Assembly (NCBI GenBank): GCA_965235115.1
Contig: OZ249441.1
Coordinates: 6,634,001-6,698,000 of the forward strand
DNA from: Laetmonice hystrix
Lineage: Eukaryota
Direction: 5' to 3'
Length of the DNA stretch: 64,000 nt
The translations under genes and the position numbers were made by a program. How positions within the stretch are numbered: position 1 is the first letter of the stretch; each line of letters starts with the position of its first letter. Under the pieces are notes generated by a model. The model did no database searches, was not told where the DNA came from, and saw nothing but the letters and a program-made list of their open reading frames with translations. Shown here piece by piece: positions 26,001 through 38,000 of this stretch.

Positions 26001-29000
26001 AGTGTCCCTCCTCCAGGTGTTGATTGACGTTACTATTGGTGACTAGCCCCTCAGTGTCCCTCCTCCAGGTGTTGATTGACGTTACTATTGGTGACTAGCC
26101 CCTCAGTGTCCCTCCTCCAGGTGTTGATTGACGTTACTATTGGTGACTAGCCCCTCAGTGTCCCTCCTCCAGGTGTTGATTGACGTTACTATTGGTGACT
26201 AGCCCCTCAGTGTCCCTCCTCCAGGTGTTGATTGACGTTACTATTGGTGACTAGCCCCTCGGCGTCCCTCCTCCAGGTGTTTATTGACGTTACTATTGGT
26301 GACTAGTCCCTCAGCGTCCCTCCTCCAGGTGTTGATTGATGGCGAGGACATCCGTAACCTGAACGTGAAATGGCTCCGTGAGAACATCGGAGTGGTCAGT
26401 CAGGAACCCGTCCTGTTCGGTACGACAATCGCTGAGAATATTCGATACGGACGCCAGGACGTCACACAGGATGATATGGAGCACGCCGCTCGCAAGGCGA
26501 ACGCGCACAACTTCATCATGGACCTCCCAAAGGTAGTGTAGCGACCCTGACTGTGGGTGTTAGTTTTAGTACAGGGCCGGGGATAGTTTACTTCTCGTTG
26601 TGTTCATTTACCTCGAAAGGATTGAGACGGTGTGGCTGGAGTGGGGGAAAATGGACTAAGGTGTTAAATATGGGCAAAGAGGGGAGGCGAGACATAACAC
26701 AGCATATAGTTGATAATGAAATATATTGGTCACTTCACGGTCCCTGACCCGTTGTGGTTGGCGGCTTACCTGTTTCATGTGCACGTCATTTACAAATCAA
26801 GATAGCGGGTTTAGACAGAGGGAGGGGGGGTACATCTCTTGGGAGAGCGCCACTCCTTTGGGAGGCGAGCCAGCTAGCAACACACACCGCGGAACAGCAG
26901 GGTAGGTCTTCGGCGCAGAAGGTAGCACTGGGTTGGGAGGCTCGGCATTGACCTATCAGTCGCCAGCCTCAGCCGGACCAGGTTGCCGAATGCACTCCCG
27001 CTGCTGGAAACTGAAGAATCTCTTGTAGACCAGTGCCGCCAACTGCGCGCTTACTCCGCTCTCCCGACTGCTGCTCTACTGCTGCTCTACTGCTGCTCAG
27101 GCGGGTGGTGGTGTTGGCTGCCGTCCCATCGGAGAGGGTGGATCACTCTCCCCGAATACAGGGCGTGCAGGCCCTTATAAAGGGAAGGGGGGCTGCAGCC
27201 TACAAGGCCGGCGACCAGTGAGGGGCAGCCCTCTCCACCCGGCCAGCGGGGCTGACCAATGGGCAAGCATCCGCCCGGGAGTGGACTGAGATTGACGTCT
27301 CAGCTCCCCACTTGGCCACGCCCACGCACGCACAGTATGGACACTGGCGGGTGGGAGGGGGGCCACCACGGTCACCGGCACATACACTAGAATAAGGCCT
27401 TACAATAAACTTAAGGGAAAACCGCACACACAAACCCAAAATCGCCACATCCCACCCTACCTTCGTAAAAACTCGTCCTCGAGTTTAAGGCAAGGAGGGA
27501 ACCACATAAAACGGGAGTACAATAAAAGCTAAGGTCAACAAGCACGTTGACTGACACAAGTATACTTACAAAAGTACGCTTACAAAAGTACACTTACAAC
27601 AAAAGTACTGTAATAAGAACTCCTTGGCCTAACACCTGCTTTAATAACTGACCCAAGGAAAAGTAAACGATGGGGAGAGGGGCTGATCTCTCTCCCTCTC
27701 CAGCGGTGGGGTCACACGACAAAACTCTACTTTAACACTGGCCCAGAAAATTAAAAATAACGACTAAGGGGCTAGTCTGCCTCAGCCTCCAGCGTTGGGG
27801 CCTGTAAAACAAAATACGTTAACACAATAATTACATCCTGTCAATCTAACACCAGCCCAGAAAATTAAAATAACGACTAAGGGGCTAGTCTGCCTCAGTC
27901 TCCAGCGTTGGGGCCTGTAAAACAAAATTAACACGAATATCAAGTCCTGACAGTCTGCTTTAAAGTTTAAACACTTGTGGCTCAGAAAAATACAAAATAG
28001 CTACTGGGGCAGGGTGCTAATCTACTCTGCCCCCTCCAGCGTTGGAGCCAATACACTTTACCTTTACACTTTACATGGACGGGGTCGCCGGAGATTCTAA
28101 AGACACAAGAGCCGAGCGCAAGACGTCAATGGCCCTTTGCTGCCTGCTGCCGTTCCTGACCTGTCCCTCCAACTCGTGGATCCGACCTTGCCGGGCGTCG
28201 ATGGCCTGTTGATGGGCCGTTCCTAGGTCTTGCAGGTGGAGCTCGTAAAGCTGCTCCCGCCTATTCCAATATGCCTGTTGTCGCGTTGTCAGGAATCCCT
28301 GTAGATCTCTGGCGTAGCAGAGCCACTCCTCAATACTGGCCAGCTGCTGCTGCAGCTGGGTCAGATGCAACCTGCGTCCCTCCCTGTCAGCCGGGACGGG
28401 CTGAGCGTCGAGTGCCGGTGTGACCAGACTCTCAGACGGGGGGCGCGTGGGTGACCCATTCCTAAGTTGGGGAGTTGGTGCTGGGGTGGCCGCCGGACGC
28501 CCTGCTGTGGACGCCGCTGGTGTCTGGCCCTGCGGTGGGGGGTTCTGGGGAGGACCCTCCCTGGTTGGAGGTCTGTCTGTAGATTCCCGATGATTCCTGC
28601 CTGACGGTCCCGATGGTGCCGGCCTAGAGTGCCGTGGTGACCCTCGGCGGCCCATCTCTCTCTGCCGACGGTGGCTGGCCTCACGGGGGTGCCCCGGCTG
28701 CCCTCCGGTGCGTGCTCCTCGGTGGCTGGGCCGAGTTCGGTCGGCCAGGTGGGGCCTGTCTCTGCTGGTCGGGGGTCGGCGCTGCCCTCCCTGGGGGCGT
28801 GTGGCGTCGGGGTTCGGCTGGCCTCCCCTGGCCGCCGCTGTTTCTCCGTCGAAATCAGTGCCAGCGTGAATCTCAATAGTGTCCATGACAGCAACTTAGA
28901 ATGACTTGTTATATTGACCTAGTACAACTCTAGAATGAGCGTCAGTCTCTCCAGCCTTACATATACCCTCCAAACTAGGCAAGTAATAAATAGAAGCCTT

Positions 29001-35000: not shown

Positions 35001-38000
35001 CCCGGCCAGCGGGGCTGACCAATGGGCAAGCATCCGCCCGGGAGTGGACTGAGATTGACGTCTCAGCTCCCCACTTGGCCACGCCCACGCACGCACAGTA
35101 TGGACACTGGCGGGTGGGAGGGGGGCCACCACGGTCACCGGCACATACACTAGAATAAGGCCTTACAATAAACTTAAGGGAAAACCGCACACACAAACCC
35201 AAAATCGCCACAGTAGCAAGCTTTGATACGAGGTGTTCTGTAGAGAGATGTGAACCCACTGGAATCCAAATCCAGAATGTTTTTATATGGTTAATTCTAT
35301 ACGCTCAAGAATAGGCTACTCTTTTAGTTCTCAATGAAGGGACATGCAGGAACAGCATTGTCATCTAGATGGGAGCGAAGTTTGGTAGGGAGAAACTATT
35401 ACATCCTCGGTTGAATTGCCTTGATACCAACAGAAGTACGAGACGCTGGTAGGCGAGCGAGGAGCCCAGCTGAGTGGTGGGCAGAAACAGAGAATTGCTA
35501 TCACCCGGGCGCTGGTTCGGAACCCCAAGATTCTGCTGCTGGACGAGGCGACCTCGGCCTTGGATACGGAGAGTGAGGCTTCCGTTCAGGCCGCCCTTGA
35601 CAAGGTGAGAGCCTCGTCATCGTACTGTTGGCTATCTTCGAGCGGGAATAAATCTTCTCATTTATTCAGTCCGGGAAGATGATGGCGATGATGATGAGGG
35701 CGATGATGGTGATGAAATGTTATAAGAAAAACCCGCACACTGAGTTTAGGTCCCACTCATTTTGAGAAGCGGCAAAGGTACTTTTCTAAGTGTAACACTA
35801 CATCGACACAGTGTACAACCCGGCCTCTCCCGGGCCACCTTTTGTAAGAGAACCAGTTCCAGGTTACAAGATGTTGTTTGTCATGTCCCCAGGCTCGTAT
35901 TGAACACCTTTTGTAAGAGAACCAATTCCAAGTTATAAGATGTTGGTTGATTTCCCCCAGGCTCGTATGGGCCACCTTTTGTAAGAGAACCAATTTCAAG
36001 TTATAAGATGTTGGTTGATTTCCCCAGGCTCGTATTGACCACCTTTTGTAAGAGAACCAGTTCCAGGTTACAAGATGTTGTTTGTCATGTCCCCAGGCTC
36101 GTATTGTCCACCTTTTGTAAGAGAACCAGTTCCCAGTTATAAGATGTTGGTTGATTTCCCCAGGCTCGTATTGTCCACCTTTTGTAAGAGAACCAGTTCC
36201 AAGTTATAAGATGTTGGTTGATTTCCCCAGGCTCGTATTGACCACCTTTTGTAAGAGAACCAGTTCCAAGTTATAAGATGTTGGTTGATTTCCCCAGGCT
36301 CGTATGGGCCACCTTTTGTAAGAGAACCAATTCCAAGTTATAAGATGTTGGTTGATTTCCCCAGGCTCGTATTGACCACCTTTTGTAAGAGAACCAGTTC
36401 CAAGTTATAAGATGTTGGTTGATTTCCCCCAGGCTCGTATTGTCCACCTTTTGTAAGAGAACCAGTTCCAAGTTATAAGATGTTGGTTGATTTCCCCAGG
36501 CTCGTATTGACCACCTTTTGTAAGAGAACCAGTTCCAGGTTACAAGATGTTGTTTGTCATGTCCCCAGGCTCGTATTGACCACCTTTTGTAAGAGAACCA
36601 ATTTCAATTTATAAGATGTTGGTTGATTTCTCCAGGCTCGTATGGGACGAACGACGCTGGTAATTGCCCACCGTCTGTCTACCATCAGTAATGCTGACAA
36701 GATCGTAGGGTTTGACGATGGCGTCATATCCGAACAAGGCAGCCATGATGAGCTGATGGCACTTGGTGGCATATATCACACCCTGGTCATGAATCAGGTA
36801 AATATGTCACACCCTGGTCATGAACCAGGTAAATATGTCACACCCTGGTCATGTTCTAAATCATCAAAGATAGACCCCTTAAAGTCCAACAGACATCAAA
36901 ATTTACATGAAATTTAGTGCCAGATCCTGATGATACATGTAATTTGTTGTTGTTTAACTTAAAGGAGCGGTTATTGTACAAGAATATGAACTGTGTGTAA
37001 GCCGTTTTAAAGACCAATTCCCCTAGTGACGTCATCAGGGGCAATGGTAAAGAATAGGCAGGAGTGAAACTGTGATGAGGCACGAGATTCGAATTTTCAA
37101 TATTTTTCTAAATTGAGAGGACTTCTCAGAAAACCTATCAGGGATACGGCTACAACTCCAAGTGATCTATCTAGATCAGTAAAGTTACCTATGTGATGTC
37201 AGTTGCACTTTAACTCATGAATGCGAAACTATAATTGCATTTTTTTCTTTGTAAAAGACTAAAAAGGTTGTCAAGGGAGATGATGAGGAAGACATTGAAG
37301 ACGATGATGTAGAAGGTGAGTTTGGGAACCTTTTCCTTCAACATACCGGTAGGCCTAAGTATCAGAGATGTCCTTCGTATCTTAATGTACATCCTGCACA
37401 TCCTTATCCTCCACATCCTCAGATCTTAACAAATCAGAGTAACACTTGTGTTTCGTAGGGCCCAATATGAAAAACCTTTCAAGCTTTCTCCTGTTCCACT
37501 GATTCCCCAGCCGATAAGGGCCGGATCCGGCGGACGTCGACCGGACCACGTACAAGCTACCGCCGGGGGACGTCAGTGACGTCACGACTGACGTCACGCA
37601 CGATGTCAACCGAGAGTGAGAAAGCCGAGGTACGGGTCACGGAAGTCAAAGGTCACGATGTGCATGACGCACATCTCCGGGGTTAAAGTGTCAGCAAAAA
37701 TTCCCCACCTTTTACCGACGTACTTCAAGGACACCATGTTAAAATGTTAAAACTAACCAGCCGAAATATGAGGGAGAAAGAGAGGAGAGAGAGAGAGGTC
37801 ATAACCGGCTTGACCTTCATTTCAGGAGGACGAGGACCTGTCACCACCGTCACTGAAGCGAATCATCCATCTGAACTCCTCAGAGTGGTACTTCATTGTG
37901 TTTGGCTGCCTGGCCGCCATGGTTTCAGGATCCATTCAACCTCTATTCGCCATTGTCTTCTCCGAGATCATATCGGTAAACAGACTCACTGAATAATGCC

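Follow-up and report, generated by a model that had tools for sequence, protein, structure and literature searches.

A 64,000-nucleotide stretch of the Laetmonice hystrix genome (assembly GCA_965235115.1, contig OZ249441.1, positions 6,634,001 to 6,698,000 of the forward strand) was analysed. The whole of this stretch is referred to here as the window, all coordinates are positions within it, and it contains 0 N bases. A P-glycoprotein-like ABCB gene, which encodes a full transporter, lies on the plus strand of the window, and one of its introns holds, in antisense orientation, a long terminal repeat (LTR) retrotransposon. The element lies on the minus strand at 26537-35212 and is 8676 bp long overall. 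It is a very young insertion that encodes a Gag and a protease (PR) and no reverse transcriptase (RT), RNase H or integrase (IN).

The ends of the element are well preserved. Both LTRs are 913 bp long and, as determined by exact extension of a direct repeat at an offset of 7763 bp, they are the same at 913 of 913 bases (100%). In the sense of the element, the 5' LTR is the copy at 34300-35212 and the 3' LTR is the copy at 26537-27449, both on the minus strand. The repeats have TG..CA ends, reading TGTGG...CTACA in element sense, and a TATA-like motif, CTTTATAAGG, is present at 34936-34945 in the 5' LTR, with its copy at 27173-27182 in the 3' LTR. A polypurine tract (PPT; 27450-27464, minus strand) of 15 nt, 13 of them purines, adjoins the 3' LTR and reads GAAGGTAGGGTGGGA on the sense strand. 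At the other end of the interior, a TGG-initiated 18-mer resembling a primer-binding site (PBS), TGGTGCGCGTGACCAGGA on the sense strand, occupies 34275-34292 (minus strand) and is separated from the 5' LTR by a 7-nt spacer. The element is flanked by a 4-bp target-site duplication, GTAG, at 26533-26536 (left copy) and 35213-35216 (right copy), and the left copy also represents bases +1 to +4 of the host intron.

The target site can be reconstructed from the two exons on either side. The exon on the left (26329-26532, plus strand) comprises 68 codons of the first nucleotide-binding domain (NBD1) of the ABCB protein, ends in ...FIMDLPK, and matched an Abcb4 chain at approximately 80% identity in a PDB sequence search (E=4e-48). 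The exon on the right (35434-35604, plus strand), identified by exon search, carries the NBD1 signature motif and lies behind an ...AACAG acceptor, 221 bp past the element. The insertion point is 4 bp from the splice donor, in which the exonic AAG is followed by GTAG, and the original intron was 221 bp long. Because excising the element together with one GTAG gives back a clean 221-bp intron between consecutive ABCB exons, the insertion is a true one, and it is very recent. Intron bases +5/+6 were altered from CA to TG by the event; the insertion may affect splicing, and it may be polymorphic. The original prediction had described identical LTRs, a perfect target-site duplication and recent transposition, all of which hold: the first two base for base, with the 221-bp intron as the empty site, and the third by LTR identity and the restored host intron. 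It had also listed a PBS and a PPT. The PPT stands as described. The PBS is verified only in part, as a TGG-initiated 18-mer in a window that has no tRNA gene; its resemblance to the 3' end of tRNA-His is no more than a lead and plays no part in the reading.

The first open reading frame of the element (ORF1; 31254-34280, minus strand) spans 1009 codons from stop to stop. From its first ATG at 34238, it provides an intact Gag-PR ORF of 995 codons; residue numbers given here count from the start of the stop-to-stop frame. The sequence that follows this ATG is a Ser/Arg/Pro-rich low-complexity N-terminal region (33411-34238, minus strand), and an N-terminal motif of ORF1 is common to two proteins of a sister family described below, P0155 and P0160. 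This N-terminal part of Gag, which is disordered, contains an 11-aa repeat encoded by three 33-bp tandem repeats at 33868-33981. Next comes a helical, capsid-like Gag core (aa 299-479; 32844-33386, minus strand), several of whose relatives give Retrotrans_gag, Ty3_capsid or PNMA hits. A CCHC zinc knuckle characteristic of a nucleocapsid (NC) is located at aa 532-545 (32646-32687, minus strand; Pfam zf-CCHC, aa 531-546). It is followed by a retropepsin-type protease domain at aa 607-738 (32067-32462, minus strand; Pfam Asp_protease_2, aa 610-716, E=7.8e-6), in which the protease motifs are intact: LIDTGSS, containing DTG, at aa 622-628 (32397-32417) and ILGLDF from aa 695.

Structure prediction agrees with these assignments. 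In an AlphaFold2 model of ORF1 built with 60 relatives, the predicted local distance difference test score (pLDDT) exceeds 90 for the capsid-like core, the knuckle and the beta-rich protease domain. In Foldseek searches, the protease domain was aligned to the Ddi1 RVP domain and to the EIAV and HIV proteases with a target TM-score of approximately 0.8. The family profile of ORF1 also matches Ty3 Gag-Pol and the capsid structures 7q5b and 6r22, as well as retroviral nucleocapsids, ASPRV1 and Ddi1. Judged from profiles and models, the Gag-NC-PR portion thus looks intact and Ty3/Gypsy-like, in keeping with the intact gag-protease that had been proposed, since capsid, CCHC knuckle and DTG protease were recovered between Pfam, AlphaFold2 and Foldseek. 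A domesticated gag-protease host gene of the PEG10, ASPRV1 or PNMA-like kind was also considered. This candidate is ruled out by the identical LTRs, the target duplication, the PPT and the antisense intronic position.

The enzymatic part of pol was sought over the whole interior (27450-34299) in six frames. Three methods were applied. In the first, 30 stop-to-stop pieces from the six frames were compared with Pfam at E<=1, and none of the RVT, RNase H or rve families was found. The second was a tblastn search with six polyproteins of the clade, namely P0006 (Pecten), P0142/P0162/P0163 (Cordylochernes), P0015 and P0003 (Solea), at a word size of 2 and E<=50. Only the gag-PR-linker part of the queries matched, with aa 366-865 of P0142 aligned to window positions 33350-31812 (E=2e-27), and every RT, RNase H or IN segment of the six polyproteins gave an E-value of 0.4 or worse. 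For the third, five natural relatives supplied their post-protease regions for a local pol hidden Markov model (HMM), which was run against all six frames with stops read as X, at E<=100 and with filters off. There were zero matches in the interior, while held-out controls scored 1e-47, 6e-59 and 0.

The three methods agree that RT, RNase H and integrase are absent from every frame, as had been predicted. Degenerate pol was named beforehand as the result that would overturn the prediction if it appeared at 28900-32100; none was detected there, and it is ruled out by Pfam, tblastn and the local pol HMM with its working controls. Homology to the relatives ends in the linker between PR and RT, at approximately aa 823 of ORF1 (window position 31812). 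With regard to classification, the element shows LTRs with TG..CA ends, a target duplication within the 4-6 bp range, a PPT and the Gag-NC-retropepsin order of Ty3/Gypsy elements. What it does not show is the RT - RNase H - integrase order in pol, which is seen only in its relatives P0006 and P0142. It is therefore Gypsy-derived by gag-PR ancestry and not a complete Ty3/Gypsy (Metaviridae) member.

The ORF1 tail (aa 739-1009; 31254-32066, minus strand) aligns weakly over its first ~85 aa to the PR-RT linker of the relatives, and the rest is without relatives: none was found by word search, among 163 fetched proteins or in PDB, and no match to it was listed among the best 150 of the 4773 relatives recovered with HMMER. 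AlphaFold2 predicts the tail to be unstructured throughout (pLDDT 26-43). Its open frame of 289 codons was reached by none of 2000 shuffles. The tail is followed by a spacer of ~2.36 kb (28887-31250, minus strand) with a GC content of 0.45. Each of its six frames is interrupted by 35-50 stops, and no protein or RNA family could be recognised in it. A second ORF (ORF2; 28071-28886, minus strand), which had been anticipated and is confirmed, encodes 271 aa. Its Arg/Pro/Gly-rich aa 1-165 are predicted by AlphaFold2 to be disordered, and aa 168-263 are predicted with confidence to form a single long, coiled-coil-like helix. The open run of 274 codons at ORF2 was matched by 0.45% of shuffles, and a second frame is also open at this position, as occurs in GC-rich sequence. 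For ORF2, no Pfam family was assigned, no relative was found by word search or among the 163 fetched proteins, and PDB comparison returned noise only. Further towards the 3' LTR, the untranslated part contains a two-copy direct duplication of ~113 bp (27733-27956, minus strand; 86-96% identity).

Two candidates for this region were tried and rejected. ORF2 is not Env-like, as it has no hydrophobic segment and its model consists of a disordered region and one helix. A captured RNA gene or short interspersed nuclear element was dropped on the Rfam result, since no RNA family reached the gathering score in the interior and only noise appeared at E<=1.

In total, ~4.4 kb of unrelated sequence lies between the linker and the 3' LTR. 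Pol was not simply excised, because this sequence, including 270 further in-frame codons and an open ORF2, follows the linker. This leaves two options, a lineage with a long region behind pol or the replacement of pol. The ORF1 tail is most likely a read-through beyond the junction of pol loss. For ORF2, the most likely options are a 3' ORF that the lineage inherited or uses as an accessory, and a frame left open by chance in GC-rich sequence.

It might be argued that these open frames conceal autonomy, that is, that the ORF1 tail or ORF2 represents an unrecognised polymerase or integrase. Both are open for longer than chance predicts and have no known relatives. Nevertheless, a disordered tail and an ORF2 made of a disordered half and a single helix display no catalytic fold or motif, and 186 and 271 aa are far too small for RT, RNase H and integrase. 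No LTR element is known to rely on a non-homologous RT or IN. Such cryptic autonomy is very unlikely, close to negligible.

The element might have been autonomous when it inserted and have lost pol afterwards by a local deletion or rearrangement, or its interior might be an artefact of assembly. The analysis is based on one assembled sequence, and ~29% of the window consists of tandem repeats, which can mislead assemblers. However, zero LTR differences leave almost no time for a second event, the junction is without a flanking repeat or breakpoint signature while ORF1 runs continuously across it, the 4.4 kb of extra unrelated interior goes beyond a bare deletion, and the window has no N gaps. 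A loss after integration, or an artefact, is accordingly regarded as improbable.

The relatives of ORF1 were sought in a collection of ~1.8 billion representative proteins. Word search returned three proteins, and an exhaustive HMMER search with aa 290-1009 of ORF1 returned 4773. The best 150 of these 4773 relatives align solely to gag, knuckle, PR and linker, and they include 128 gag-only proteins, 16 gag-PR proteins without RT and 5 proteins with RT. The closest relatives belong to a sister family with 53-59% identity, which is represented by nine near-identical gag ORFs on nine ENA contigs (P0004, P0154-P0161). The full-length members of this family, P0155 and P0160, are 500 aa long and end ~35 aa past the knuckle, with no in-frame protease. 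The sister family could be gag-only, or it could carry pol in another frame. The named relatives belong to scallops, a mussel and a pseudoscorpion. Some of these, at 25-30% identity, are full gag-PR-RT-RH(-IN) polyproteins, and the domain order of P0006 and P0142 is gag-ZnK-PR-RT-RNaseH(-IN). Among invertebrate gag-PR relatives without RT, P0008 and P0009 have C2H2-zinc-finger-like tails behind the protease. In P0001, P0002 and P0138, the pre-RT leader is kept and the sequence then diverges. These cases suggest that pol was lost or replaced more than once in the clade, or that the gene models contain artefacts.

The preferred reading, to which a probability of roughly 0.8 is given, is that the element was already pol-less when it was copied and that it was mobilised in trans. 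The enzymes were needed in trans because RT, RNase H and integrase are absent, and the claim of mobilisation in trans made in the original prediction is supported by the complete absence of pol from a young insertion. The process can be pictured as follows. RNA polymerase II would start downstream of the TATA-like motif in the 5' LTR, and ORF1 would be translated as a Gag-PR polyprotein. The protease would dimerise and cleave Gag, and the capsid would build particles that enclose the RNA of the element itself. Gag-Pol would come from an autonomous Gypsy relative present in the same cell and would co-assemble into these particles. The RT/RNase H of this partner would then copy the RNA from the PBS and the polypurine tract, and its integrase would insert the DNA, making the 4-bp duplication.

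Whether the copy is one of many is a separate matter. The balance tips, if only slightly, towards its membership in a multi-copy family that propagates. Two observations are counted in favour of the preferred reading of a pol-less, trans-mobilised element: pol-less gag or gag-PR proteins are common among the best 150 of the 4773 relatives, and the sister family is present as nine near-identical gag ORFs. In a bolder version, semi-autonomous Gypsy parasites would form a lineage that is stable and propagates. They would bring their own capsid and protease, take only RT and integrase, and use ORF2, with its basic disordered half and long coiled-coil helix, as a conserved accessory, e.g., for recruiting partner Pol or element RNA. 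This version seems unlikely.

The copy may instead be a one-off defective product. In that case, template switching or recombination removed RT-RH-IN or swapped sequence, and the enzymes of the parent, present in the same particle, produced and integrated a single dead-end copy; a propagating pol-less family would not exist. Reverse transcription often yields defective retroelement copies. A single copy is visible in the window, no family member among the ~1.8 billion representative proteins has the same tail or ORF2, and the ORF1 tail is wholly disordered by prediction, as an out-of-context read-through would be. On the other hand, the host genome seems to be outside the searched collections because ORF1 obtained no match to itself, and the missing copies therefore say little. 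Moreover, the tail stays open for 270 codons in the 4.4 kb past the junction, and pol-less gag and gag-PR proteins recur among the relatives. For these reasons, a one-off origin is possible but doubtful.

Several points weigh against the preferred reading. There is no tRNA gene in the 64-kb window to pair with the PBS-like tract, and the spacer is 7 nt. LTR identity could be inflated by assembly polishing, and the gag-only and gag-PR counts are probably inflated by gene-caller fragmentation and short contigs. Neither a second copy nor a solo LTR occurs in the window. No pol-bearing partner was found in the window or in the protein collections, where the closest gag is 59% identical and gag-only. 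At the DNA level, the gag alignment gave no relatives in contigs from viruses, prokaryotic genomes and metagenomes, and a search of metagenomes with the exact sequence of the U5/PBS junction was equally empty. Transcription, particle formation and co-packaging are, finally, steps that we infer.

The host locus has features of its own. The ABCB exons were searched singly by reference, and further plus-strand exons with identity to vertebrate Abcb4/ABCB1 were located for the first and second transmembrane domains (TMD1, 21199-22280; TMD2, 38840-39070), together with two exons for the second nucleotide-binding domain (41244-41450 and 41778-41924). A 52-bp satellite with ~28 copies (24880-26339) extends right to the point where the NBD1 exon has its acceptor. 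The repeat unit holds the polypyrimidine-CAG acceptor and the first 9 exon bases, and the array seems to have been born from the intron/exon junction, with ~28 potential decoy acceptors. Across the whole window, minisatellites account for 18.3 kb of the 64 kb (~29%). They form over 20 different arrays, whose periods lie between 16 and 218 bp and many of which are in introns of the gene. Among them are a 60-bp array with three open frames (14216-17011) and an array of 109/218 bp that is rich in GC (45422-48203).

The element can be compared with several known groups of LTR retrotransposons. Canonical single-ORF Ty3/Gypsy elements of the same clade, such as P0006 (Pecten maximus XP_033761565; E=1e-36) and P0142 (Cordylochernes, K02A2.6-like; E=2e-27), are homologous to it in the capsid, the CCHC knuckle, the protease and the beginning of the PR-RT linker. 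These proteins, in contrast, continue into RT, RNase H and integrase. They are not the partner of the element, because identity is just 25-30%.

The closest functional parallels are non-autonomous. Terminal-repeat retrotransposons with a GAG domain (TR-GAGs) of plants have a single ORF for GAG only, and one TR-GAG has been seen transposing (PMC8704663). Like them, the present element is bounded by two LTRs, keeps its capsid coding region and lacks RT, RNase H and integrase. TR-GAGs also share with it a presumed or shown mobilisation in trans, for which they are sometimes called semi-autonomous. However, TR-GAGs are smaller and reside in plant hosts. The present element comes from an animal, is 8.7 kb long and has, in addition to its Gag, a protease, a second ORF and a long spacer closed in all frames. 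It does not have the single GAG-only ORF of the group, and its 8676 bp fall outside the TR-GAG size range, judged from the GAG/PROT families that exceed that range (PMC13570524). The likeness to TR-GAGs that had been proposed thus stands as far as a pol-less, trans-mobilised element is concerned, and strict membership does not, on account of the protease, the two ORFs and the 8.7-kb length. In the literature searched, the term TR-GAG occurs in plant papers only.

A further parallel is offered by the 28 GAG/PROT-only families of sugar beet, which exceed the proposed TR-GAG size range (PMC13570524). They keep gag and protease, as the present element does, and often have no traceable autonomous partner. 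They are many-copy plant families with remnant domains, whereas here a single animal copy has intact domains and an extra 3' ORF. Large retrotransposon derivatives (LARDs) are set at >4 kb (PMC13570524). Like them, the element is large and non-autonomous, has LTRs and encloses a long interior lacking pol, and its size fits. LARD interiors are non-coding, unlike the intact 995-codon Gag-PR ORF found here, so it is not a LARD.

Among animals, the mouse IAP 1-delta-1 is a well-studied, partly deleted, non-autonomous element; it has retained coding capacity derived from gag, and its mobilisation takes place in trans (PMC7411935). It is likewise a young animal LTR element and is insertionally active; its gag-derived protein aids its own retrotransposition, and GAG and POL are supplied by full-length elements. 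Unlike the present element, IAP 1-delta-1 is a class II endogenous retrovirus and not Ty3/Gypsy. A short gag-pol deletion gives it a GAG-POL fusion, most of its pol is kept, and its partner is known. The suggestion that an animal example would be notable in itself was therefore overstated, given this mouse precedent (PMC7411935). In the literature searched, no Gypsy derivative with gag and PR only was found described for fish. More generally, entries for non-autonomous LTR elements of animals are numerous in repeat libraries.

Functionally, the element is like the plant TR-GAGs, the GAG/PROT-only families and IAP 1-delta-1; parasites that exploit other parasites are already on record for plants and mice. 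When a non-autonomous LTR element retains gag, it reveals how one retroelement parasitises another and which functions are required in cis. If the present copy belongs to a family, an animal case with both gag and protease would broaden a view that comes mainly from plants and from the mouse elements IAP and ETn, and such a family would test the advantage of carrying its own protease.

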